Sequence record: MH791398.1
Length of the DNA: 64,000 nucleotides
Direction: 5' to 3' (one strand)
The notes under the pieces: generated by a model
The model's database searches: none
What the model was told of the DNA's origin: nothing
What the model saw: only the letters and a program-made list of their open reading frames with translations
Made by a program: the position numbers and the translations under genes
In this document: piece by piece, positions 2,896-62,675 of the stretch
How positions within the stretch are numbered: position 1 is the stretch's first letter
Layout: each line of letters begins with the position of its first letter

Positions 2896-3396
2896 ATGTT
2901 AGAAAAAATGCTTAAATTCGACGAGGGTTCGAAGCTTACTGTTTATTGGGATACCGAAGGATATCCGACTATCGGTATTGGTCATTTAATAAAGAAACTT
3001 CGTACGAAAGATATGGGGGAAATTAACCGTGAGTTAAGTTCCCATGTTGGGAGGGTTATTACCGACGGTAAGATTACTCAATCAGAAGAAAGTCAACTTT
3101 TTGCTAAAGATCTTGAGGTAGTTAGAAATTCTATGAAAGGGTATGTCGATTTATGGTCTACATATGTTGGATTAGATGAAGTCAGAAAAACCGCATTGGA
3201 AAATATGGTTTTTCAGATGGGGGCTAAAGGTGTAAATGGTTTCCCATCAATGCTTCGCGCTATGCGCTCCAAGAACTGGACAGAAGCCAAGAAACATGGG
3301 CTTGCTAGTGCTTGGGCGAGACAAACGCCAAATCGCGCTAAGAGAGTTACAGACGTTATTGAGACTGGTACTTACAAAGGTTATCCATTCGCATAA
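2896..3396 (+). CDS. e: Soluble phage lysozyme (GH24, T4 e/gp5-type endolysin)
   Basis: DEG...YWDTEGYPTIGIGHL catalytic E/D/T motif; ALENMVFQMG; WARQTPNRAKRV. Confidence 0.92.
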   Translation: MLEKMLKFDEGSKLTVYWDTEGYPTIGIGHLIKKLRTKDMGEINRELSSHVGRVITDGKITQSEESQLFAKDLEVVRNSMKGYVDLWSTYVGLDEVRKTALENMVFQMGAKGVNGFPSMLRAMRSKNWTEAKKHGLASAWARQTPNRAKRVTDVIETGTYKGYPFA

Positions 3397-3399
3397 AAC

Positions 3400-3428
3400 A
3401 AAAGGGATCCCATATCGGGATCCCTTTT
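3400..3428. terminator. Bidirectional rho-independent terminator
   Basis: AAAAGGGATCCC-ATATC-GGGATCCCTTTT between convergent lysozyme and tk genes. Confidence 0.85.
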
Positions 3429-4003
3429 TATTTTCCACTCATACCAGCAACCCAGTGTTTACGACAAACAGAAATATATCTATCGTTTCCACCAATACAA
3501 ACCTGATCACCAATAACTTTTTTACCGTTCTCATCAACACGAAGGTTCATTGTTGCTTTAGAACCACACCAACAAATTGTTTTATGTTCCACAATTTGTT
3601 CAGCCATAACCACAAGTTGACGACTTGCATCAAACATCTCTCCATTGGAGTCAGACATAAGACCATAACACATAACAGGAACATCGTAGTTATCAACAAT
3701 AAAAGCCAGTTGCTTTACTTGTTCGACCGTCATAAATTGGGCTTCATCGATAAGAATACAATCTATTTTCTTTCCGATCTTATAACTCAAATAAAGATCA
3801 GTTAAATTCTCCTTATCAGAAAACATAATTGATGGACGAGAAACCCCCAATCGTGAAGAAACCATTTCCCCATCACGAGTATCAATGCAAGGTTTTAAAA
3901 CTAAAACTCCCATTCCTCGTTCTTCATAATTATAAGCAACTTGCAATAAATGAGAACTCTTTCCCGCATTCATTGCGGAATGATGGAAATGCAAACTAGA
4001 CAT
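3428..4003 (-). CDS. tk: Thymidine kinase
   Basis: HSAMNAGKS P-loop, ILIDEAQF, VMCYGL, C-terminal Zn-binding Cys (CWCG...YISVCRKH). Confidence 0.95.
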   Translation of the reverse strand: MSSLHFHHSAMNAGKSSHLLQVAYNYEERGMGVLVLKPCIDTRDGEMVSSRLGVSRPSIMFSDKENLTDLYLSYKIGKKIDCILIDEAQFMTVEQVKQLAFIVDNYDVPVMCYGLMSDSNGEMFDASRQLVVMAEQIVEHKTICWCGSKATMNLRVDENGKKVIGDQVCIGGNDRYISVCRKHWVAGMSGK

Positions 4004-9294: not shown

Positions 9295-9370
9295 TGGAGC
9301 CGGGTGTGGGACTCAAACCCACGACCTACGGATTACAAGACCGTCGCTCTATCAACTGAGCTAACCCGGC
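9295..9370 (-). tRNA. trnT: tRNA-Thr(UGU)
   Basis: Cloverleaf, anticodon loop CTTGTAA, encoded CCA. Confidence 0.93.
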
Positions 9371-9649
9371 AGAGGATTATAATCAGGATCGTTAGACTGT
9401 GATTATATCCTAATGTAGTTGACATGCTATCACAAGGAGGAAGGACGTTCAACCGATTTTTGTCCATCTGTTCGTTGTTTGGTAAAGGACTGTTACCTCA
9501 AGTTTCACCCTGCTTGTCAAGGGGTAGTTACCATATCGTCTTTATACTACCAATCCCGCCTGAAACCTAATGGCACGTTTCAGGATATCCAGATTCTCTA
9601 TGGCTGGCTTATTCCGGGGCATACGTCGTTACCCGTTCTTTGTGCTAAG
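9371..9649 (-). ncRNA. Candidate structured ncRNA, segment B (between tRNA-Pro and tRNA-Thr)
   Basis: 8-bp stem 9559-9566/9577-9584 and 11-bp stem 9373-9384/9401-9411; no sense ORF. Confidence 0.45.
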
Positions 9650-9725
9650 TGGTCGGTGATACAGGACTCGAACCTGTGACCCTCTGGTCCCAAACCAGAC
9701 GCGCTACCAACTGCGCTAATCACCG
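9650..9725 (-). tRNA. trnP: tRNA-Pro(UGG)
   Basis: CGGTGATTAGCGCAG..., loop TTTGGGA, CCA. Confidence 0.95.
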
Positions 9726-9879
9726 AAAAGTTCCAAACCAACTGTATTTTACATACCAGATGACCACATCCCTATAATGGTTGATTTGGATTACCCCGTG
9801 CTTATCCGTAACGGTTTAAAACCGCAAGGGGGCATCGTCTCCGAGGATTTTATCAGAACGTCTTCTAACTTCTTCTATT
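9726..9879 (-). ncRNA. Candidate structured ncRNA, segment C (between tRNA-Tyr and tRNA-Pro)
   Basis: 11-bp stem 9732-9742/9780-9790 with a G-U pair only on the minus strand; CCCC/GGGG closing stem with a nested hairpin. Confidence 0.4.
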
Positions 9880-9970
9880 TGGTGGATGTTGTTGGATTCG
9901 AACCAACTTGTTTACCCAGAGGGAACGGATTTACAGTCCGCCGCCACACCGCCATCGTAGCCGAACATCC
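9880..9970 (-). tRNA. trnY: tRNA-Tyr(GUA)
   Basis: Loop CTGTAAA, long variable arm, CCA. Confidence 0.9.
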
Positions 9971-9976
9971 AGAATT

Positions 9977-10052
9977 TGGCTGGCGAGGTGGGATTCGAAC
10001 CCACGACATACGGATTAACAGTCCGCTGTTCTACCTACTGAACTACACGCCA
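9977..10052 (-). tRNA. trnN: tRNA-Asn(GUU)
   Basis: Loop CTGTTAA, CCA. Confidence 0.92.
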
Positions 10053-10053
10053 T

Positions 10054-10131
10054 TGGAAGCGGGAGGTGGATTTGAACCACCGATTTCCAGATAATGAGTC
10101 TGGCGAGAACTCCTGACTTCTCCACCCCGCT
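10054..10131 (-). tRNA. trnM: tRNA-Met(CAU), fMet-like body, atypical
   Basis: AGCGGGGTGGAG 5' end like tRNAfMet; loop CTCATTA (U37); CCA. Confidence 0.75.
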
Positions 10132-10174
10132 ATGATATTTAGGGTGGTCTTTCACCCCTTCATGAATCTTGGTC

Positions 10175-10203
10175 ATTATAACCCGGCTACATACGCGCAT
10201 CAA
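10175..10203 (-). promoter_or_regulatory. sigma70-type promoter for the downstream tRNA/ncRNA run
   Basis: TTGATG-N17-TATAAT on the minus strand. Confidence 0.65.
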
Positions 10204-10237
10204 CATCCCTTTTATAATTTAGAGAGCTATGGGACTC

Positions 10238-10477
10238 TTAACAGCTCTTATTAAGATGATCTTTCAACCGTTCTTTTTCAACACACCACGATATTTTATT
10301 TTCTTTTATCCAAGGAGGTGTATCTGACCAATAAATAACAGATAGTTTAGATATGAAATTCGATATAATCTCAATATCCCAATCAGAAAACCCGATATGT
10401 TTATATGAAATCAATTCGGTTGGAGAATTTACATCAAATGACTTTAATCCGTTATCACCAACATATTCCATTTTCAT
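10238..10477 (-). CDS. Hypothetical protein in the tRNA cluster
   Basis: 79 aa ORF. Confidence 0.55.
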   Translation of the reverse strand: MKMEYVGDNGLKSFDVNSPTELISYKHIGFSDWDIEIISNFISKLSVIYWSDTPPWIKENKISWCVEKERLKDHLNKSC

Positions 10478-10495
10478 ATCACGTTTCCCTTTATC

Positions 10496-10572
10496 TGGTG
10501 GCCCCTACTGGACTCGAACCAGTGACCAACCGATTATGAGTCGGCTGCTCTAACCAACTGAGCTAAGGGGCC
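10496..10572 (-). tRNA. trnI: tRNA-Ile2(CAU), lysidine type
   Basis: GGCCCCTTAGCTCAG...CTCATAA...GGGGCCACCA, closely resembling E. coli ileX. Confidence 0.9.
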
Positions 10573-10576
10573 AAAT

Positions 10577-10644
10577 GATATGTTCTTTAGTCGAGCCGAC
10601 TTATCCGTATTTTTTCAACGGTGAGCTGATAGCTGTAACACATC
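10577..10644 (-). ncRNA. Small cloverleaf-like non-tRNA element
   Basis: 8-bp closing stem GATGTGTT/AACATATC enclosing three short hairpins. Confidence 0.35.
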
Positions 10645-10656
10645 AATTTTAAATTT

Positions 10657-10732
10657 TGGAGCGGGTAGCCGGTAACGATCCGGTCTACTCAAACTTGGAA
10701 GGCTTGCATGTATCCATAAACACCTTACCCGC
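10657..10732 (-). tRNA. trnG: tRNA-Gly(UCC)
   Basis: Loop CTTCCAA, CCA; T-loop ATCGTTA is non-canonical. Confidence 0.85.
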
Positions 10733-10733
10733 T

Positions 10734-10817
10734 TGGTCGGGATGGACGGACTCGAACCGTCACGCCTATGGCGCTAGAACCTAAATCTAGTGTGTCTGCC
10801 AATTTCACCACATCCCG
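10734..10817 (-). tRNA. trnL: tRNA-Leu(UAG)
   Basis: Loop TTTAGGT, variable arm, CCA. Confidence 0.9.
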
Positions 10818-10894
10818 TGGTGCGCCGTACTGGATTCGAACCAGTGACCCACGCTTTAGAAGAACGTTGCTCTATCCAACTGAGCTAACAGCGC
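10818..10894 (-). tRNA. trnR: tRNA-Arg(UCU)
   Basis: Loop CTTCTAA, CCA. Confidence 0.92.
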
Positions 10895-10895
10895 A

Positions 10896-10944
10896 ATTTA
10901 TATAAACATCATATCATAGTTAGAAAGGATGTTTAACTTTTATT
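10896..10944 (-). promoter_or_regulatory. Early-type promoter, repeat copy 1
   Basis: GTTAAAC-N17-TATGAT with extended TG; 49-bp direct repeat with 11670-11718 (2 mismatches). Confidence 0.65.
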
Positions 10945-11338
10945 TGAAGTATTTTTCGAAGTAAGCGACTGGATGTCTTGCTTCTTCATCATACTCGTAT
11001 TTAGGGGTATCAGAAAACAACACCCTATAAGCAGTTTTCATCCCTGAACCATATGGTATCTCAATTTCGTCGTTAAAGTCAAATGCGATATAACCTTTTT
11101 TACGAAGGGAACGACAACTAACACTCAACCAAGGCCCACAACAGGATTTAAGTCTACCAATTGCGTAGATATCCTTACCCTCATTGTTAATATAACAATA
11201 AATCTTGTCTACATCAACACCATGGAGTTTTTTCCATTCTTCACTGGTTTGTTTGAAGATCAAACTTGATTGAACCACAGTAAGACCGTTCTTTACAAAC
11301 TTACTAATACCAAGAATATGAATATCATGTTTATTCAT
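10940..11338 (-). CDS. Hypothetical protein
   Basis: 132 aa ORF, GAG RBS. Confidence 0.65.
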   Translation of the reverse strand: MNKHDIHILGISKFVKNGLTVVQSSLIFKQTSEEWKKLHGVDVDKIYCYINNEGKDIYAIGRLKSCCGPWLSVSCRSLRKKGYIAFDFNDEIEIPYGSGMKTAYRVLFSDTPKYEYDEEARHPVAYFEKYFK

Positions 11339-11574
11339 TTTAATATCTCGATTTTTGGTAGAAAGGCTTCAAATGTTTACCACGCATAATCTTTACACAT
11401 TTACCTTTACAGTGATCTTCGTTGAAGATACTACCCCAAAGGATCCCACACATGTAATTTCTGATGTATACGTTCATATTAAGCATCTCATATTGAATTT
11501 GAGAGATGATAAACTCGTTTAACGTCCAAAAAGCTCATTCAACAAAAAGGAATTTGAGTTTATCATCTTGTATT

Positions 11575-11667
11575 TGGTGCGTGAGGTGGGAATCGAACCC
11601 ACGATGTGCCATTATGCAGTATCGGATTTTAAGTCCGATGCGTTTCAACCAACTTCGCCACTCACGC
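11575..11667 (-). tRNA. trnL: tRNA-Leu(UAA)
   Basis: Loop CTTAAAA, long variable arm, CCA. Confidence 0.9.
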
Positions 11668-11669
11668 TC

Positions 11670-11718
11670 ATTTATATAAACATCATATCACAGTTAGAAA
11701 GTATGTTTAACTTTTATT
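11670..11718 (-). promoter_or_regulatory. Early-type promoter, repeat copy 2
   Basis: Near-identical to 10896-10944; directly upstream of a tRNA. Confidence 0.65.
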
Positions 11719-11967
11719 TTTACTTTCTTTTATACCAAGTCGATATGCTTCTACACAGTATGCGTCGATCCTCGATACTGGGACCATAAAAGCTTTAGAA
11801 AGCCGAATCTTAATACGTTCGTTCTCTTTAGCCCGCTCATATAGTTTTCGAAATGGCTCAGGGTCTATAGGCTGAACAGAACATATTTGGTTTGCTATAT
11901 CTAGCGGGTATATTCTTCCACCCCAAGTTACTTTTTCTGATTCTAAAAAATTCATATCATTTCTCAC
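11707..11967 (-). CDS. Hypothetical protein
   Basis: 86 aa ORF overlapping the upstream stop codon. Confidence 0.55.
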   Translation of the reverse strand: MRNDMNFLESEKVTWGGRIYPLDIANQICSVQPIDPEPFRKLYERAKENERIKIRLSKAFMVPVSRIDAYCVEAYRLGIKESKNKS

Positions 11968-18124: not shown

Positions 18125-18295
18125 TTAGTCCTTTTCTCTCGCCTGTTCTTTAAGATCGTTTAGGTAGAGGTGAACATAAACACCAAATTCAAAGGGGGTC
18201 ATATCCTCAAGGTCCGAATGGCTCCATCCATCTTTTCTAAGCTTATATACCGTATTAAAATGATCGTATATGGTATGGTTAACAAGCGTTATGCG
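18125..18295 (-). CDS. 51: gp51-like C-terminal extension, probably reached by -1 frameshift from gp26
   Basis: 56 open codons RITLVNH...WSHSDLEDMTPFEFGVYV; the only in-frame ATG lies inside the conserved motif; frame begins at the TTTTTTC heptamer. Confidence 0.7.
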   Translation of the reverse strand, partial: RITLVNHTIYDHFNTVYKLRKDGWSHSDLEDMTPFEFGVYVHLYLNDLKEQAREKD

Positions 18296-19074
18296 AAAAA
18301 ACTTTCTACCCCTTTAAGTGTAACAATTTCTTGGTGTCCACATTTTTTACACTTTACAGGTATATTTAGAGTATGTTGGGGGAGGGATGTTACAAATTTA
18401 CCCATTTTTGTCAAAGCAACTGAATCGGCGTATTCCATAATTTCAGAAATATCCTCATACGGAATATCAACACCAACCTTAACAACCTGATCTCCCATAT
18501 GAACTTCGTCAATACAGCGATTGATTAAGTTAAACAAGTCGGACTCAACTTCTACGTTGAAATATTCAACCTCGCTGATATTAGGATATCTCATATAAAC
18601 TGTCATGTTCTCATTCAGAACAATTTTGTTATCTGGCGCATCAGACAATTTAGCGTTATTCAAGTTTACGTTTACTTTAATATCAGAACCACAACGAACA
18701 ATTTCACCATATTGGTCATATTGAACATTACCATCTTCATCGAGAATTTCGTTGGCGCAAGTAAACATAACCGGGACAGTTGGACTTGCTTTTGATAACT
18801 TATACAAAGCTAGATAAACTGCTTCCAAGTCAAACACAGGTAAAAGGTCTACATCAACATTATCAGTTAGGATACAGTTTTTTACGATTTGAATGATCGC
18901 ATCATCGATTCCAGTATTGGCTTCGTTAGCCAACATCAACAGTTTCATTTCTTTCATCAAAAAAGCACGAACCTTGATCTTCCTACCATCTGATAAAGTC
19001 ACATTGGTCTGTTGTACGTTTTTCTGCATAGCAGCAAGAAGTACACTCTTGTCAATCGTGGTTTTGTTTGTCAT
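18289..19074 (-). CDS. 26: Baseplate hub assembly protein gp26-like
   Basis: KVRAFLMKEMKLL, LPVFDLEAVYL, Cys pairs (TC...RC; CKKCG), ends LKGVESFFA. Confidence 0.82.
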   Translation of the reverse strand: MTNKTTIDKSVLLAAMQKNVQQTNVTLSDGRKIKVRAFLMKEMKLLMLANEANTGIDDAIIQIVKNCILTDNVDVDLLPVFDLEAVYLALYKLSKASPTVPVMFTCANEILDEDGNVQYDQYGEIVRCGSDIKVNVNLNNAKLSDAPDNKIVLNENMTVYMRYPNISEVEYFNVEVESDLFNLINRCIDEVHMGDQVVKVGVDIPYEDISEIMEYADSVALTKMGKFVTSLPQHTLNIPVKCKKCGHQEIVTLKGVESFFA

Positions 19075-19147
19075 AGTTAAAAATCCCTTATAGATCTATA
19101 CTTATTTAGTACATTGTAACATGATGTTCTTCAAGACTTAATCTTAG

Positions 19148-19270
19148 ATAGTTTCACTTGCAATCAAACTATAAAGTCTCTATAAGTATTTATATAGAAA
19201 ATCTATAATTAGAAAGTGTGTGAGCGAAGCGAACAGGCGGCTACGCCGTCTCACTACGTTCGAGATCTAT
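19148..19270 (+). repeat. Origin/ssi-like element, copy 1
   Basis: Inverted near-identical copy at 61359-61479; 51-bp core 19220-19270 is identical. Confidence 0.85.
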
Positions 19271-19277
19271 AGATATG

Positions 19278-19302
19278 AAAAAGCCACCCCGTAGGATGGC
19301 TT
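19278..19302 (-). terminator. Terminator after gp54; near-identical to the one after inh (61848-61872)
   Basis: AAAAAGCCACCC-(C/A)GTAGGA-TGGCT. Confidence 0.7.
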
Positions 19303-19306
19303 AGTA

Positions 19307-20248
19307 TTAACGAATGGCTTTCACAACGCCTGTAGTACGTCTTATGATACTCTCTATAGAGTCGATGGTGTTCTCTTCACCCTTAGTAGGAACATGCACT
19401 GTGGTTGATACAGCGAATGTGACGGTAAAGGTTGCTACCTGAGAATTGTTCTCAAAATCTAGTTGAACTTCACCTACCTCTATGGGAAAGCACCCTGTAT
19501 TATGTACAGTGGATTGCTTAACTCCATGACGGTCTAACGTGATGACGTCAATATCCTTTGCATACGTATTATAAAATCCAAATTGTCCATTTCTTGGGTT
19601 GACAATTGTATTCTGCCATGTTAGCATCAAAGAACGTTCCTCGTAAGAAGGGGAACAGTAAAACGTCATACTCATGGTTCCGTAGTTTCTACCTCTAACT
19701 TCGTGTCTAGGTAGTTTGTCTGTACGGTTGATTGTCGTTTCCAAAGTAGAACTAGGAAGACCGACACTCTTTACCATTAATGCTAGATCTCTGTTTACAT
19801 CGTAATCAGTTCCCAAAAATCCATCAAGGATCTCTCCTGCTCCCGGTATGATCCGGATCAAGGACGGGTCCCAAGCACCAAAAATCTTCTTCATGCTAGG
19901 CGTGAGGATTTTGTGTGCTTGTCCCAAAGCAATGTCCTGAACTCTATGCCAAGCATAACTTGTACCAGAGAAAAGACTATCATTGACGTCCATCCCGCTA
20001 CTTGAATCAGGAAATATTGGTAAATCCCTATCAAAAACACCATCACTGAATATAGAGGTTCGGAAATCTCCGAACCTTACAATAAACATGTTTGGTCTAG
20101 CCAGATCAGTATTTTCAACTTTCCGCATAAACCTAGTTAGGTCGGGGATCTCGCTTGCATCCCCACCATCGTTTAATAAATCTTCACCAAACCCGATAGT
20201 ACTATCTATCATACTATCTATGGTTGGAATAGGTGGTATTAAGTTCAT
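19307..20248 (-). CDS. 54: Baseplate tail tube initiator gp54
   Basis: DLARPNMFIVRF, LMVKSVGLPSS, PIEVGEVQLDFENNSQVATFTVTF. Confidence 0.88.
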   Translation of the reverse strand: MNLIPPIPTIDSMIDSTIGFGEDLLNDGGDASEIPDLTRFMRKVENTDLARPNMFIVRFGDFRTSIFSDGVFDRDLPIFPDSSSGMDVNDSLFSGTSYAWHRVQDIALGQAHKILTPSMKKIFGAWDPSLIRIIPGAGEILDGFLGTDYDVNRDLALMVKSVGLPSSTLETTINRTDKLPRHEVRGRNYGTMSMTFYCSPSYEERSLMLTWQNTIVNPRNGQFGFYNTYAKDIDVITLDRHGVKQSTVHNTGCFPIEVGEVQLDFENNSQVATFTVTFAVSTTVHVPTKGEENTIDSIESIIRRTTGVVKAIR

Positions 20249-21246
20249 TAGTATGATCTCCAAACGGAATTCGTATTATAGGTCTTCGGAGGAACACCAG
20301 ATACAAACCGTTGAGTCGGTAGATTAATGACAGAACTCCAATCCTGCGGTTTAATCTCCATTAATGGACCCTTAATATGACCCGGCAAATACGCTTTGAT
20401 CATATGGTCTGCACCTCTCATTCCCTTAACCTTACCCCAGTTGATATTTAGGGATGTACGGTTGGTAATCCTCTCTGTGGTTGCATGTTTCAGCAACTCT
20501 TCCATAAATTCTTTACGGGCTTTGATCGGGATATAGTGAAGGTTGAGACCCAACATCAAACCTTTGTGTTTTGCACTTAGGCCAAGATATACGATCAGGG
20601 GGAATTTATCCCAGTATGGTAGTGTTGCCTTATGTTTTGCGTCATATGCGAAAGTATACAATCGCCCAGCAATTGGTCTTGTTACTTGGTGACCACGAAC
20701 GTTTTTCTTTATGAAATTGTTAAACCATTCCGTTGACTTCTTCTGAGACTTTACAGGCTCTTTTTCGTGTTGTCTTACTTTATTTCTAAAGTCAGCCAAC
20801 AACATCTGATATTTTTCGGCTTTAGATAGTTTTCTTCCGCTTATTTGCGCATCTTTTAACTTCTTAGCCAGTAGAATATCTTGCTTGAATCTTCTGAATG
20901 CCCGCTCCGTGGTTTCTTTATTAAGTCCACGTCCTTCAATATAATTTTTTAGAGTAATACTACTCTTTTCTTTTTGTGTCAAATAATCAACACCAAGCTC
21001 AATCCATTGTTGTTTATTCTTGTTTGGGTTTACCAGAGAATAATAAGTCTTTATTTCTTCTCTGTGTCTGCGCATAGCTCTACTGAATGTTTCATAATTC
21101 AACCCTTTTTCCTCTGCATATTTCTTTGCAGTAAGACTTGGGTTCTTTTTCTTGGCGTTCATATAATCAACACCAACATCAATCCATTGTTTTCTATTGC
21201 GTTTTTCTGTTGTGGACTCTGCACGTTCAGTTATTTCGAATATCAT
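20248..21246 (-). CDS. 2: DNA end protector gp2
   Basis: GRLYTFAYDAKHKATLPYWDKFPLI...GLNLHYIP. Confidence 0.95.
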   Translation of the reverse strand: MIFEITERAESTTEKRNRKQWIDVGVDYMNAKKKNPSLTAKKYAEEKGLNYETFSRAMRRHREEIKTYYSLVNPNKNKQQWIELGVDYLTQKEKSSITLKNYIEGRGLNKETTERAFRRFKQDILLAKKLKDAQISGRKLSKAEKYQMLLADFRNKVRQHEKEPVKSQKKSTEWFNNFIKKNVRGHQVTRPIAGRLYTFAYDAKHKATLPYWDKFPLIVYLGLSAKHKGLMLGLNLHYIPIKARKEFMEELLKHATTERITNRTSLNINWGKVKGMRGADHMIKAYLPGHIKGPLMEIKPQDWSSVINLPTQRFVSGVPPKTYNTNSVWRSY

Positions 21247-21734: not shown

Positions 21735-21757
21735 TATTTAGGGTTTGCCCCTAAATA
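21735..21757. promoter_or_regulatory. Back-to-back divergent late promoters
   Basis: TATTTAGGG-TTTGC-CCCTAAATA, a perfect 9-bp inverted repeat between gene 4 and gene 48. Confidence 0.8.
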
Positions 21758-24632: not shown

Positions 24633-26467
24633 AATTTGAATTCTTTTTTGGCGTTGTAGAGGATCGGTTTGATCCTCTTAATCAAGGTAGATATAGAGTT
24701 CGTGTGATGGGATACCACACTGACCAAAAATCAAAAGATGATTTGATTGGTATACCTACTGATGAACTTCTTTGGATGCGCTGTGCCACGTCAACGGATT
24801 CAGCCTCTATATCTGGTGTGGGAAATAGTCCAACAAACCTAGTAGAGGGTGTGTGGGTTATGGGGGTTTTCAAGGATGAATTTAAACAGGATGGTTTAAT
24901 ACTTTTTTCTATCCCCGGATCTTATGTCCAAAAACCAAATACTCTACGGGGATTCTGTGACCCAACAGGTCAATACCCTCGTTATATTGGTAACGACGTT
25001 AATATATTAGCCGGTGGTGGACAAAAAGGGGCTGGTATTCATGGAACTGCCCCGGTGTCTATTGATGGAAAGCCGTTATCGGTTTATACTCAGGATGAAA
25101 ATACTTCTGGTGCATTAGCCCCTGATGACAAATCATTTGACGATGCAATCGCAGATGACGATCCGGATTTCACAATTGAAAAAATGTTGAAGGGGGACGA
25201 AGGGGTTAGGAACAAATGGTATCTCGATTCTCTTGGATATCCAACCATAGGTATTGGTCATCTAATCATACATGAGAATACACGAAACGTAGCCCGTATA
25301 GATGCGATTCTAACCCAACAGTTGGGTCATCCTGTACAAGGGGGTGTGATCTCCCCAGAAGACGTTACAAAGCTGTTTAACGAGGATATCCAAAAGACTC
25401 GTGCTGATATGATGAGATTCGAAAATATACGTCGTGTCTACGTCAAAGAAAATAGAAGTCGTCAAATGGCTTTAGAAAATATGGCGTTTCAGATGGGGGC
25501 TGGCGGATTAGCGAAATTCAAAAATACACTAAACGCTATGTATGAAGAACGTTGGCGAGATGCATATAATGGTATGCTCGACTCTCTTTGGGCTAGACAA
25601 ACTCCGGGTCGAGCGAATCGGGTTGCCAAGATTATTTTAACCGGAAACCTAGAGTCTTATGGAGTAAAACCAAAACCAGAGGAACCGCCTATTATCCCAA
25701 TATCTGGGAGAATGAAGCGTTCTATTATGGCATTGTCCTCTCCGGTTGTTTTTGCTGACGAAGTAGACCCAGATGATCCGTCCGTTCCACCACCACCTCG
25801 TACTGATGGTCTTCTTTTCGAAGAACCACCTAGCGCATATGCTGCTGAATACCCATATAACCATGTATATGAATCGGAGAGTGGTCATATTCAGGAATTT
25901 GATGATACTCCGGGGAAAGAACGATATAACCTGAAACATACATCAGGGACGTATATTGAGATTTCTGGTGGTGGTCGTCAAGTAAACAAAGTTATGGGTG
26001 ATGACTATGTTATCGATATGGCAAACAGGATGATCAACGTAAAGGGTGATTATCAGGTAGTTGTTGAAGGTAACGCGACTGTATACGTTATGGGTAACTG
26101 TACCCAGCAAGTTGATGGAAACTTGACTCAGGTTGTCAAAGGAAACGTATCTGAATCGGTTTATGGTAACGTTGAACAGTCGGTGAAGGGGAACGTTAAG
26201 CAAACTGTTAACGGTGGCTTAGAATCGCGTATAGACGCTGATGTGACCCTATCTGTCGGTGGTAGTGTTGTTAGTGATATAGAAGGGAATTTAACTGCAA
26301 CAGTTCAAGGTAATTGCAACGAGAACGTAGAGGGTGATATGAACCTTAATGTTTTTGGTGATTATACAGTTACTGTATCTGGTGACTATAAATCGCAAGC
26401 TGCTCAATCTCTTATTACCTCTCAAGGTACGACCGAGATTAGTGGTTCTACTGTTAGTATTAACTAA
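24629..26467 (+). CDS. 5: Baseplate central spike / tail lysozyme gp5
   Basis: OB-fold VVEDRFDPLNQGRYRVR, lysozyme domain, YPYNHVYESESGH, VxGxxxxx beta-helix repeats. Confidence 0.97.
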   Translation: MKFEFFFGVVEDRFDPLNQGRYRVRVMGYHTDQKSKDDLIGIPTDELLWMRCATSTDSASISGVGNSPTNLVEGVWVMGVFKDEFKQDGLILFSIPGSYVQKPNTLRGFCDPTGQYPRYIGNDVNILAGGGQKGAGIHGTAPVSIDGKPLSVYTQDENTSGALAPDDKSFDDAIADDDPDFTIEKMLKGDEGVRNKWYLDSLGYPTIGIGHLIIHENTRNVARIDAILTQQLGHPVQGGVISPEDVTKLFNEDIQKTRADMMRFENIRRVYVKENRSRQMALENMAFQMGAGGLAKFKNTLNAMYEERWRDAYNGMLDSLWARQTPGRANRVAKIILTGNLESYGVKPKPEEPPIIPISGRMKRSIMALSSPVVFADEVDPDDPSVPPPPRTDGLLFEEPPSAYAAEYPYNHVYESESGHIQEFDDTPGKERYNLKHTSGTYIEISGGGRQVNKVMGDDYVIDMANRMINVKGDYQVVVEGNATVYVMGNCTQQVDGNLTQVVKGNVSESVYGNVEQSVKGNVKQTVNGGLESRIDADVTLSVGGSVVSDIEGNLTATVQGNCNENVEGDMNLNVFGDYTVTVSGDYKSQAAQSLITSQGTTEISGSTVSIN

Positions 26468-26469
26468 CG

Positions 26470-26498
26470 AAAAGGGATCCCAAATCGGGATCCCTTTT
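26470..26498. terminator. Bidirectional terminator (near-identical to 3400-3428)
   Basis: AAAAGGGATCCC-AAATC-GGGATCCCTTTT. Confidence 0.85.
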
Positions 26499-26501
26499 GT
26501 T

Positions 26502-26777
26502 TTAGATGTCGTCTGCACTTCGTTTGATATATTCTTGGAGTGCTTCTTTTTCAAGTCCCCACACAAAAGATAGAGTGCCGCCACCTACATCAATTTCAAA
26601 TGGACAGAAATCCCAATAAATGGTTTCTTTCATCTTTACTTCCATCAGAAGTTCTTCGTCTTCAACTTTATCAAAGTTCTTTTCGATAAAGTTTTTTAGT
26701 TCTCGACGAACTCGAAAATTATGAACCTGATTTTCTTTAAAACCAGCAAAATTAGTTCCTACATAAATTAGTTTCAT
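26502..26777 (-). CDS. Hypothetical protein
   Basis: 91 aa ORF with RBS. Confidence 0.65.
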   Translation of the reverse strand: MKLIYVGTNFAGFKENQVHNFRVRRELKNFIEKNFDKVEDEELLMEVKMKETIYWDFCPFEIDVGGGTLSFVWGLEKEALQEYIKRSADDI

Positions 26778-46985: not shown

Positions 46986-47047
46986 AATATAAAGGCGGGG
47001 GAAACCCCGCTTCCCTAAATACAATAAATACATATGGAGTGTAAATT

Positions 47048-58975: not shown

Positions 58976-59068
58976 CGTTTTTCTTACTGGTCTAAATAAT
59001 ACTAGATAGAGTTCATACAGTCAACCAATGAATGAGCCCTAAATAAAAGAAAAAGAGGAATCTTAAAA

Positions 59069-60345: not shown

Positions 60346-60378
60346 AAAGCCCCAACCTTTTTAGGTCGGGGCTTTTTT
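60346..60378. terminator. Bidirectional terminator
   Basis: AAAGCCCC(A)ACCT-TTTT-AGGTCGGGGCTTTT. Confidence 0.8.
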
Positions 60379-60727
60379 ATTTTGATTGCTCAAGAACAGT
60401 TTCGATGAAAATATAATATTTCATCTTTTCTATTTCATGTAATTCATCGTAAGATGTCAAACATGGATGGGTTTTCTCGTCTCTAGATTTATCTTCACCA
60501 AATATCCAACCTTCTCCCTCTTTATAATTTCTCCAAAGCTCATGAACAGTTCGAGCATCAGAATCAGGGTGGTCGATTATATATGTTACATGTTTAGTCC
60601 AGACCCGTTTAACCTTTTCGGGTTCTTCTTTCCACAATGTATCGGTGTCGCCTAGTATTAAATTAAACCGTCGAATCGCATCATGCGCAGTTCTGGCGAT
60701 CTTACGTGGTGAGCTTTTCATTTTCAA
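60377..60727 (-). CDS. RyR-domain protein
   Basis: HELWRNYKEGEGWIFGEDKSRDEKTHPCLTSYDEL matches the RyR repeat consensus; late promoter at 60757-60764. Confidence 0.82.
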   Translation of the reverse strand: MKMKSSPRKIARTAHDAIRRFNLILGDTDTLWKEEPEKVKRVWTKHVTYIIDHPDSDARTVHELWRNYKEGEGWIFGEDKSRDEKTHPCLTSYDELHEIEKMKYYIFIETVLEQSK

Positions 60728-60759: not shown

Positions 60760-61320
60760 TTAGAGATTGAAAATGTCAACCTTTTCTAATACTGGTATAT
60801 CATCAATACCCAACCATTTACAAAGTTTTGATCTTTGAACTGGGTTCATAATGTTTAGGGTAGGTATATTTAGGCTTCTTGCTATTTTAACCGCAGTAGC
60901 AGTTCCACCAGATACAGTACCATGTATCGATTCTTCCGCACAAAATACAACTAAGTCAGAATAAGACTTGAGATTTAATCCCATAACTTGAGGAACGTTC
61001 CTAGCGTGTAATTCTTGGTGACCAATTGGCATAAATTCCCATCCAATACCAGACCCATGAACACGGGAAGCAAGCAATTCAAATTCATAATAGTTTTCAT
61101 GATTTTTGACATTAACACAACCGGGTCTATCATCAGGACGATATACAACGGTTAATGCTGGGTCATATTCGGTTAGGAAAAGCGTATCAGAACCAATGGC
61201 ACCACCAGATCTAGCACCATAACCACGATCAGAAAAAGCTTTTCCAATTCTTATCATCAACTGTTTATACTCTTCGTTAGGATATCTGGTTCCTATAAGA
61301 GTTACAATTTTCCTTTTCAT
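60760..61320 (-). CDS. SLOG/DprA-like Rossmann-fold protein
   Basis: TLIGTR...RSGGAIGSD...SGGTATAV..A....IP..N. Confidence 0.75.
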   Translation of the reverse strand: MKRKIVTLIGTRYPNEEYKQLMIRIGKAFSDRGYGARSGGAIGSDTLFLTEYDPALTVVYRPDDRPGCVNVKNHENYYEFELLASRVHGSGIGWEFMPIGHQELHARNVPQVMGLNLKSYSDLVVFCAEESIHGTVSGGTATAVKIARSLNIPTLNIMNPVQRSKLCKWLGIDDIPVLEKVDIFNL

Positions 61321-61358: not shown

Positions 61359-61479
61359 ATAGATCTCGAACGTAGTGAGACGGCGTAGCCGCCTGTTCGC
61401 TTCGCTCACTCTTTCTAATTATAGATCTTCTATATAAATACTTATAGAGATTTTATACTTTGATTACAAGTGAAACTAT
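61359..61479 (-). repeat. Origin/ssi-like element, copy 2 (inverted)
   Basis: Reverse complement matches 19148-19270; core 61359-61409 is identical. Confidence 0.85.
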
Positions 61480-61574
61480 TTTATTTTGTATATAAAAGAT
61501 ACAAAAAAGGTGATCTCTCGACCACCTAAGTATAAAAAGTTAAAAACATTCGTAATGTCTGATACAATACGAAA

Positions 61575-61796: not shown

Positions 61797-61877
61797 TAAA
61801 CACCCTTCTTATATTGACCAAAATGGTCAATTGGTATTTAGGGATACAAAAAAGCCACCCAGTAGGATGGCTAGATA

Positions 61878-62675
61878 TTAGTAAATGGTATGGAAACGAG
61901 AATTACGACTCTCGCGCAATGTCACACTACCATTAATCTGGATGTAATAAAGAACTGTTTTCAGAAGTGCTTTATCCGGTTCGCGTTCATGAGTATCAAT
62001 AATACTCTTCCAAGACGGTCCTTTCTCAAGGATCCAATCAAGAATCCAATACGGGCAATTGAGGTATTGGTTACCAACAGCCCCAATCAGATTTACTTTC
62101 GGCTTGAAACCATAAGTCAAATCCGGTTCTTGGGTATCTTTAGTAGTTTCCAAATTCATTTTTTCTTTAACGAACTTCTTTTCATCTTCAATTAATTCGT
62201 CAAGAGTTTTAAACCCAGAAGAATCAATATATTCTGGTTGTTTCGGTGGAGTGAATTCAATTTTAACATCGTTGGGAGTATTGATATTAACCACCCCATC
62301 ATCAATTTTGATTGATTCAACCACACCAAGTTCAATAACCTCATCTACATTGTCGAATTCGTCATCGACTACAACTGGTTCGACAAAAGGGGTTTTTTCT
62401 TTCGGTTCCGGTGCAAGGTCCAGTTTTTCATTCTCTTTGGCGTCCGCCATTTCAAGGAGTTTAACGATCATATCGTCAACCGAAGTATTAGACTTGCTAA
62501 TTTTAAAACCACATTCCTTAGCATATGCTTGAATTTTCGCTTTCGCTTCTGGTGCGGTATTAGCATCAACAATTTCGTTGATTACCCCAAGGTCAAGTTC
62601 TTTTTGTTTTTTCGCAGTAGACTTTTTTGGTTTAGTTTCTTTTTCTACTGGTTCTTCTACATAATTCAATGCCAT
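61878..62675 (-). CDS. inh: Inhibitor of prohead protease Inh
   Basis: C-terminal PYWILDWI...LYYIQINGSVTLRESRNSRF; late promoter at 62702-62709. Confidence 0.85.
   Translation of the reverse strand: MALNYVEEPVEKETKPKKSTAKKQKELDLGVINEIVDANTAPEAKAKIQAYAKECGFKISKSNTSVDDMIVKLLEMADAKENEKLDLAPEPKEKTPFVEPVVVDDEFDNVDEVIELGVVESIKIDDGVVNINTPNDVKIEFTPPKQPEYIDSSGFKTLDELIEDEKKFVKEKMNLETTKDTQEPDLTYGFKPKVNLIGAVGNQYLNCPYWILDWILEKGPSWKSIIDTHEREPDKALLKTVLYYIQINGSVTLRESRNSRFHTIY

Follow-up and report, generated by a model that had tools for sequence, protein, structure and literature searches.

What is the element that lies between the baseplate genes gp26 and gp54 in sequence record MH791398.1, and what does it do for the phage that carries it? 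The source sequence is a stretch of 64,000 nucleotides (nt) of this record, called the window here and used for all window coordinates. It shares about 98.7% identity with AS-yj, a T4-like Aeromonas phage of the Straboviridae (Emmerichvirinae, genus Ceceduovirus). A first-pass annotation of the window had described a hairpin-bearing element at this locus, duplicated in inverted orientation about 42 kb away. We found that this element, called c1 below, belongs to a conserved six-member repeat family of the Emmerichvirinae, whose members are probably cis-acting DNA sites. The layout of the repeat, an AT-rich palindromic block followed by a GC-rich hairpin module, fits origin-like or regulatory DNA sites. 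Our tentative first choice, with a probability of roughly 0.35, is that the repeats serve as origin-type, transcript-primed initiation sites.

A six-copy family with even spacing

A repeat search of the window detected two pairs of inverted arms connecting c1 with a second copy (c2), namely 19148-19220 with 61407-61479 (73 nt, 93% complementary) and 19220-19270 with 61359-61409 (51 nt, 100% complementary); a 2-nt indel offsets the two halves of the match. The annotated reverse-complement match between 19148-19270 and 61359-61479, with its identical 51-bp core, is thereby borne out. Both the GC-rich core and the AT block have two exact matches in the window, compared with 0 expected in shuffled sequences. 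Describing the element as a duplicated pair set the count too low. The annotation had proposed a search for more copies in the genome and in relatives, and local BLAST of the whole AS-yj genome located six, at about 22.3, 64.5, 94.7, 138.2, 186.9 and 227.9 kb. The repeat unit is about 125 bp long and all six AS-yj copies are intergenic.

The loci include conserved baseplate and tail-fibre clusters, and the orientation of the repeat differs among them. Copies c1 and c4 oppose both of their neighbouring genes, an orientation that is kept across genera, and c2, c5 and c6 point along with the downstream gene (for c2 a gene for a 186-amino-acid protein at 61320-60760). Only in c5 is the GC module in contact with the next gene's Shine-Dalgarno sequence and ATG. 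c3 comes after tail-fibre gene 35 and is directed towards a small open reading frame (ORF) and a convergent SegE-like GIY-YIG gene. This homing-endonuclease gene (AS-yj 226789-227691) is kept next to c3 in Aeromonas phage 65 (L016:3162-4046), with 85% amino acid identity. Further promoter-like sites follow c2, according to the promoter scan, and c3, according to our reading of its flank. Upstream terminators are found only at c2 and c3, in both cases outside the repeat. The AT block and the GC motif were never found apart from each other.

On the circular AS-yj map the gaps between copies are 42.2, 30.2, 43.5, 48.7, 41.0 and 24.6 kb (standard deviation 8.3 kb), in a genome of about 230 kb. This spacing is far more even than that of six randomly placed points: the probability of a standard deviation this small is 0.0015 and that of a minimum gap this large is 0.006. 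The copies of phage 65 are likewise even (P = 0.0017 for the standard deviation), with seven placed out of eight matching places listed, so that the spacing for this phage may be incomplete.

Architecture of the AT block and the GC module

The AT block has a GC content of 21%, compared with 39% for the window. It is characterised by the invariant pattern AGT(T/A)TCA..TG.AATCAAA.TATA, an imperfect palindrome of about 45 bp and the invariant TATAATTAGAAA. The palindrome is significant in comparison with shuffled sequences (folding z -3.3, minus strand). Its arms differ between the two block types, represented by AS-yj and phage 65, yet each of them is symmetric. The AT-rich palindrome is probably easily melted and bound by a sequence-specific protein.

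Sigma-70-like hexamers are found in three divergent versions, TTGCAA-N17-TATAAG in c1, GTGCAA-N16-TATAAT in phage 65 and TTGCAA-N18-TATAGT in a prophage homologue described below, together with a second TATAAT. The consensus promoter scan did not list the c1 site, whose -10 hexamer ends in G. None of this resembles the ordinary early promoters of the phage (TTGACA-N17-TATnAT). The promoter that had been annotated on the same side of both copies, TTAA-N17-TACAAT, turned out to be at chance level, with two sites in the scan versus 1.5-3.5 in shuffles, and its TACAAT box in copy 1 overlaps the CTAAATA late-promoter-like motif of gp26. Two other annotated features of the AT tract held in part. TATAAATA is present, on the opposite strand, but this T4 late promoter is at or below chance genome-wide (7+13 occurrences versus 17 expected per strand) and has no counterpart in the phage-65-type copies. 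The recurrent AGATCT words do belong to the repeat in one lineage but are not conserved in the other. The late promoter motif of the phage is CCCTAAATA, with 23 occurrences in the genome versus 3.4 expected, positioned 20-40 nt before late-gene starts (for example window 21749-21757, 47013-47021 and 59053-59061). A bidirectional early/late promoter cassette, in which TATAAATA on the opposite strand would be aimed at gp26 and at the gene adjacent to c4, was rejected on three grounds: TATAAATA is no commoner than chance, the late genes of this phage have another motif, and the phage-65-type copies lack TATAAATA.

Public sequencing runs labelled as RNA were considered as evidence of transcription and dropped, since the repeat itself explains the contig ends and the depth. 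Three such runs gave undirected Logan contigs over the element and the 3' end of gp54, and in a fourth run, X28 (probably DNA), a contig spans 19077-19339. The depth in one run was 66, compared with 3-8 for the neighbours; k-mers of the repeat inflate the depth and the contig ends are the repeat boundaries.

The GC module consists, in this order, of GTGAGCGAAGCGAAC, a variable hairpin of 4-6 bp and CTCACTACGTTCG. The segment that adjoins the AT block is rich in purines (20 of 30 nt). The GCGAAGC mini-hairpin, the GGCG-GCTA-CGCC hairpin and the possible GTGAG/CTCAC and CGAAC/GTTCG pairings, all annotated before, are all found in the core. The mini-hairpin is of the GCGNAGC / GCGNNAGC type that characterises single-strand DNA initiation signals, and the variants GTGAAAC, GCGTAGC and GTCGTAGAC retain both the pairing and the GNA loop. 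In c1 the GNA loops are on the plus strand only, and the computed folding energies are equal on both strands.

The fold of the core is no more stable than that of shuffled sequence (z -1.0 as RNA, -0.4 as DNA), so the support for hairpin structure comes from the comparison of copies and not from folding energy. To test structure models, we aligned 13 distinct cores. A model comprising the mini-hairpin, a GAAC:GTTC stem and the apical hairpin has 95.2% of cells paired, a nested long hairpin has 94.3% and a pseudoknot version has 92.7%, whereas slid controls, with the 3' partner shifted by 1-3 columns, have 23-44%. One pair of the mini-hairpin switches from C-G in eight copies to U-A in five copies, whereby GCGAAGC becomes GTGAAAC, and the apical hairpin shows a change from G-C to C-G. 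The covariation score of the first model was matched by none of 500 shuffles. RNAalifold independently picks the nested fold, and the pseudoknot, which is one way to read the "alternative pairings" of the first-pass annotation, fits no better than the nested models. These sequence comparisons indicate that the hairpins are maintained by compensatory changes, in a fold that may be nested or a pseudoknot and may act as RNA or DNA. A forward-strand RNA structure, suggested by the many G-U pairs in the nested model, was rejected on the grounds that RNA and DNA energies are the same on both strands. In comparisons with Rfam 15 at gathering and at permissive thresholds, only tRNAs pass in the window, and the best weak matches over the element reach 12-18 bits where gathering scores of 42-62 would be needed.

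Relatives, evolution and genomic surroundings

In our phage collection the repeat is confined to 21 records, all of them Emmerichvirinae, and the copy number is steady at about six over these 21 genomes. Each AS-yj copy has a positional counterpart in phage 65 of the genus Ishigurovirus, recognised by its flanks, and Aswh_1, avDM6 and AP1 carry copies as well. At the gp54-gp26 junction of phage 65 (L035:5170-5370) two AT blocks face each other at a distance of about 175 bp and enclose other GC hairpins, CGCC-TTT-GGCG and CGGGC-AAA-GCCCG. The AT block is therefore the constant part of the repeat and the GC hairpins are exchangeable. One of these facing blocks has its central palindrome flipped relative to its flanks, and central segments seem flipped in some other copies as well.

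Paralogous AT blocks of one genome, AS-yj or phage 65, share 93% identity. Between genomes the blocks are 84% identical for positional orthologues and 83% identical for non-orthologous pairs. The copies are thus homogenised within genomes and evolve in concert. When AS-yj is compared with Aswh_1, the AT block shows 93% identity and the gp26 proteins next to it show 73%. By this comparison of sequences, the non-coding AT block is evidently under strong constraint.

Shortened c1 and c3 copies in AS-zj, AS-sw, Aszh-1 and AsSzw2 could be taken to mean that single copies are dispensable. We rejected this as assembly ambiguity, as the shortenings coincide with N's in all three records inspected (AS-zj, AS-sw and Aszh-1). 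The GenBank records of these three phages (L154, L155, L156, L157) contain N's and missing stretches in the copies. Evidently the repeat or its hairpin defeats short-read assembly, and published genomes are unreliable at these sites. In the 254-kb record of AP1 (MT713136; L153, L034) the sequence to the left of c1 continues into the right flank of c3. The gene order of this record also jumps in other places without an element, for example from gp26 to the ligase region, so we give the hybrid junction little weight as proof of element-mediated recombination; it is either a real rearrangement or a misassembly.

Outside the Emmerichvirinae one true homologue was found, in a prophage of Aeromonas rivipollensis (L026), which has the same sequence as the IMG/VR contig L022. 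It lies in a non-coding region of 1.2 kb (L026:7260-7900 = L022:7400-8300) together with three ATGACACTAT iterons, palindromic operator-like repeats (TTCCGAA-AATATTCGA) and four GAGCG(A/T)AGCGAAC GC motifs in both orientations. The AT block of the prophage is flanked by 28-bp inverted repeats which contain the 15-mer GTGAGCGAAGCGAAC. Genes for a Rha/antirepressor, an H-NS-like protein, a T4-type lysozyme and a SegE-like endonuclease are nearby. A trans-acting factor shared by the prophage and AS-yj was looked for and discarded, with only the lysozyme and the SegE-like endonuclease in common. Scanning genome contigs with the AT-block pattern gave this one true match and four chance matches in AT-rich genomes, and a metagenome scan with the spaced AT-block pattern gave one chance match only.

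The 15-mer itself can self-fold, with pairs G-C, T-A, tandem G·A, G-C and C-G closing a GAA loop. It occurs in more than 117 IMG/VR contigs, which is roughly the number expected by chance, and just a minority of the occurrences have a non-random context. Complementary flanks of at least 5 bp surround it in 6 of 116 contexts, compared with 0.9 for re-paired flanks, and in eight contexts it is followed by a stem-GAA-stem hairpin; several contexts form inverted repeats around AT-rich DNA. Unrelated contigs with GTGAGCGAAGCGAAC include L108:13470-13760, L124, L067:12120-12480 and L047:5990-6050. There, GTGAGCGAAGCGAAC caps longer hairpins, forms terminal inverted repeats that enclose AT-rich DNA (L108, L124 and L067) or precedes stem-GAA-stem hairpins. 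This suggests that GTGAGCGAAGCGAAC is part of a wider viral hairpin motif, and the full core architecture is confined to Emmerichvirinae.

The features of both window copies and their neighbours are listed in Table 1. c1 is placed between the gp54 terminator, which is upstream of c1 in the sense of gp54, and the CTAAATA motif of gp26.

Table 1. Positions in the window of the two repeat copies, their parts and the adjacent features
Feature	Position	Strand	Description
c1 (copy 1)	19148-19270	+	Between gp26 (baseplate hub) and gp54 (baseplate-tail tube initiator); opposed to both
c1 AT block	19148-19215	+	21% GC; imperfect palindrome; invariant AATCAAA at 19163-19169 and TATAATTAGAAA at 19204-19215
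c1 sigma-70-like hexamers	19158-19186	+	TTGCAA at 19158-19163, 17-nt spacer, TATAAG at 19181-19186; putative promoter
c1 second -10-like hexamer	19204-19209	+	TATAAT
c1 GC module	19216-19270	+	62% GC
c1 15-mer	19220-19234	+	GTGAGCGAAGCGAAC; contains the GCGAAGC mini-hairpin at 19224-19230
c1 apical hairpin	19236-19247	+	GGCG-GCTA-CGCC
c1 conserved segment	19250-19262	+	CTCACTACGTTCG
c1 end of GC module	19263-19270	+	AGATCTAT
c2 (copy 2)	61359-61479	-	AT block 61414-61479; GC module 61359-61413
gp26	18289-19074	-	Start at 19074
Late-promoter-like motif	19103-19109	-	CTAAATA, about 30 nt 5' of the gp26 start
gp54	19307-20263	-	
gp54 intrinsic terminator	19281-19302	-	Outside the repeat
Intrinsic terminator of 73-amino-acid ORF	61508-61527	-	Directly upstream of c2

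The gp54 terminator is 77% similar to the one after the inh gene at 61853-61872, in direct orientation and near both copies of the repeat; the similar stretches extend over 19265-19317 and 61836-61888. The 186-amino-acid protein encoded downstream of c2 (60760-61320, minus strand) has a weak, sub-threshold DprA-like match (18.5 bits), and a gene for a RyR-domain protein follows at 60377-60727 (minus strand; Pfam, 1.5e-10). Elsewhere in the window, eight tRNA genes are clustered at 9298-11667 (minus strand), and a 61-nt intergenic repeat, 89% identical, occurs twice in this cluster (10896-10956 and 11670-11730). Two paralogues with lysozyme domains, at 2959-3433 and 25235-26504, correspond to the e-type lysozyme and the gp5-type baseplate lysozyme. 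Both are followed by a nearly identical GGGATCCC-loop-GGGATCCC terminator.

Candidate roles of the repeat

Several observations together point to a genome-wide cis-acting DNA site rather than an ordinary promoter or a selfish element, because the loci are fixed, the orientation is independent of the genes, the spacing is even, the palindromic AT block is constrained and evolves in concert, the GC hairpins with GNA loops are exchangeable and a relative lies in an iteron-rich control region of a prophage. Indirectly, the fixed loci, the orientation, the spacing, the mini-hairpins and the prophage homologue also favour the origin or priming-site proposal of the first-pass annotation. Among the functions of such a site, we rank origin-type initiation first because T4 origins are promoter-based units of about 100 bp and because mini-hairpins are known at primase and single-strand initiation (ssi) sites. 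RNA polymerase would start in the AT block and transcribe into the purine-rich GC module. The transcript would stay annealed as an R-loop, with the displaced strand folding into mini-hairpins; the RNA would then prime leading-strand synthesis, and the open strand would admit helicase and primase. This three-step logic would be the one established for T4 oriF and oriG and proposed for oriE, and six sites at distances of 25-49 kb would cover the 230-kb genome. Whether the six even sites are also the replication origins of the Emmerichvirinae, as a sequence-defined repeated family with a co-evolving initiator, seems doubtful to us; the two AT-block types would be explained by such an initiator, since it would co-evolve with its sites.

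On the T4 map, oriF is next to genes 25-26 and oriG is within gene 34, and going by this map the positions of c1 beside gp26 and c3 beside gene 35 are loosely reminiscent of oriF and oriG. The T4 genome has at least five origins, each a promoter-linked unit of roughly 100 bp, and it is in late-gene regions that most of the early synthesis begins (PMC3016281). R-loop formation by the transcript leaves the non-template strand of T4 exposed, and oriE has repeats and uses an early promoter (PMC3016281). The repeats resemble T4 origins in being units of about 100 bp with a putative promoter, with several per genome and some of them in late-gene regions or near strand switches. oriF and oriG combine a MotA box with a downstream A+T-rich unwinding element, whereas in the repeat the downstream part has 62% GC and the AT-rich palindrome overlaps or precedes the hexamers. 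A -10 hexamer is present, and in our reading there is no TGCTT-type MotA box at the right distance, although the MotA specificity of this subfamily may differ. With neither the downstream AT-rich element nor a recognisable MotA box, the repeat departs from oriF and oriG in two defining features, and at most it works like PeSLs or like oriF and oriG.

The mini-hairpins have counterparts in single-stranded replicons. DNA mini-hairpins of the GCGNAGC type are far more stable than their RNA counterparts and are found at primase and ssi sites (reviewed in PMC13037366). Mini-hairpins with GNA loops have been reported at the G4 and St-1 primase sites and in ssiA of RSF1010, and the complementary-strand origins of G4, St-1 and alpha3 count among such priming signals (PMC13037366). 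The repeat shares with these signals the GCGNAGC-type mini-hairpins with a GNA loop, here GAA or GTA; in the repeat the mini-hairpin is kept by a compensatory change from C-G to T-A and is often followed by a second hairpin of the stem-GAA-stem form. G4 itself has GCGAAAGC and not GCGAAGC. In those systems DnaG or RepB' recognises the signal on single-stranded DNA of a phage or plasmid, while the phage considered here is double-stranded and has its own gp41/gp61-type primosome; any priming at the repeat is putative.

A number of points weigh against origin-type initiation. The part downstream of the hexamers is GC-rich, the opposite of the A+T-rich unwinding element of oriF and oriG. T4 origins share no sequence motif and form no repeat family, in contrast to the family described here, and only two of them are understood mechanistically (Kreuzer and Brister 2010, PMC3016281). 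The folding energies have no strand preference and lend no computational support to the detail of a folded displaced strand. The -35-like hexamer is weak, with only TG..A invariant, and the RNA-labelled runs are uninformative. The spacing pattern was spotted post hoc, and as phage 65 shares the synteny, both genera count as one observation. Promoter activity, protein binding, R-loop formation and any role in replication are what we infer from the features of the repeat.

A regulated promoter cassette is nearly as likely as an initiation site and comes a close second; the two are not mutually exclusive, T4 origins being promoters. Here a sigma-70 promoter overlapped by a palindromic operator would respond to a phage or host regulator, the GC module would form a structured 5' leader, or the beginning of an antisense or small RNA where a copy opposes its genes, and the six sites would make up a small regulon. 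Such a cassette would be related to the promoter/stem-loop cassettes of other T4-type phages, known as PeSLs. This would agree with hexamers spaced by 16-18 nt in all three divergent versions, with a palindrome centred on the -10/start region as operators often are, and with the concerted change within genomes, which would follow from co-evolution with the regulator. The co-orientation of c2, c5 and c6 with the next gene, the contact of c5 with the Shine-Dalgarno sequence and ATG, the PeSL-like order of terminator, AT-rich region and promoter at c2 and the location of the prophage copy in a control region beside Rha/antirepressor genes point in the same direction. However, c1 and c4 would have fired towards the 3' ends of convergent genes already before the two genera separated, two blocks face each other in phage 65, the genes downstream of c2 and c3 have promoter-like sites of their own, and the AT block is unlike the ordinary early promoters. 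Even spacing throughout the genome is not expected of a regulon either, and the stem-loop comes after the promoter and not before it as in PeSLs, with the U-tract missing in most copies. The comparison with the PeSL and PmSL cassettes of T4-type phages (Arbiol 2010, PMC2839356; Comeau 2014, PMC4122927) gives a mixed result. Like PeSLs, the repeats are short composite intergenic repeats in T4-like genomes, with an AT-rich region, sigma-70-like hexamers, here with a weak -35, and a stem-loop; they are conserved enough to be recombination substrates, and c2 has the order terminator, AT-rich region, promoter, gene. In PeSLs, however, the stem-loop is an effective terminator upstream of the promoter, whereas here the conserved hairpins are downstream of the hexamers. 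A PeSL runs up to the next gene's Shine-Dalgarno sequence and ATG, as only c5 does here, and PeSLs are numerous, co-oriented with genes and located in hyperplastic regions beside indels, as opposed to six fixed and even loci of mixed orientation. With its stem-loop on the wrong side, its mixed orientation and its fixed loci, the repeat is not a PeSL.

The remaining explanations are less probable. It is unlikely that the repeats are architectural sites, that is evenly spaced binding or cleavage sites of a genome-organising protein, such as topoisomerase or gyrase sites like REP/BIME elements with IHF, domain boundaries, or programmed cruciform and recombination hot spots from which recombination-dependent replication would begin. 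Bacterial REP/BIME elements that include an IHF site (RIP/RIB) lie outside genes and combine GC-rich imperfect palindromes with an AT-rich IHF-like segment; they evolve in concert, and REPs are host elements with hundreds of copies per genome and linked to RAYT transposases. The repeat resembles them in its GC palindromes and AT-rich IHF-like segment, its two orientations and its concerted evolution. The even spacing independent of orientation and the long AT palindrome next to GC palindromes would suit such a role, as would the flipped central segments of some copies, which cruciform-prone DNA can produce, the frequent exchange between copies that concerted evolution implies and the REP-IHF-REP layout of the prophage AT block between inverted GC hairpins. 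By our own comparison, AATCAAANTATAA is one base off the IHF consensus WATCAANNNNTTR. This match is imperfect, no RAYT was found and six phage copies are far below REP copy numbers. Even less probable is a miniature palindromic element of the MITE/REP-like kind, selfish or neutral, which would have spread in an ancestor and been retained with no function; the first-pass annotation had suggested a small mobile palindromic element. Such an element would explain why a short repeat is dispersed in either orientation, why an unrelated temperate prophage has a homologue and why the 15-mer forms terminal inverted repeats in other contigs, but not that two genera retain the six loci and the orientations, that the copy number stays at about six, that the sequence is better conserved than neighbouring essential proteins or that the spacing is even. 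Moreover, no target-site duplications flank the AS-yj copies, no solo parts exist and the apparent losses, in the three records inspected, are N-containing assembly artefacts. T4-type phages recombine avidly, and two inverted repeats of 121-123 bp flank the 42-kb morphogenesis block between c1 and c2, from which a switch inverting this block had been proposed. We consider this very improbable: the pair belongs to a six-copy family of mixed orientation, AS-yj and phage 65 agree in the gene order and orientation of the block, 14 of the 21 records have both c1 flanks contiguous, and the sole hybrid junction, that of AP1, is with c3 in a record that is scrambled elsewhere too.

Within the literature that could be searched, no paper describes this repeat in Ceceduovirus or Ishigurovirus, and we rate it among the dispersed composite regulatory or structural repeats of T4-type phages. 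The copies are recombination substrates, and because of them several GenBank assemblies of Aeromonas phages (Ceceduovirus) already contain ambiguous bases. The 15-nt self-folding cap GTGAGCGAAGCGAAC recurs in structured contexts of unrelated viral contigs. In T4-type phages the choice of where replication starts is still poorly defined, and six near-identical, evenly spaced and constrained sites defined by their sequence would make this question directly testable. Even with a regulatory or architectural role, the repeats would represent a new class of genome-wide cis-elements in large lytic phages, distinct from PeSLs.

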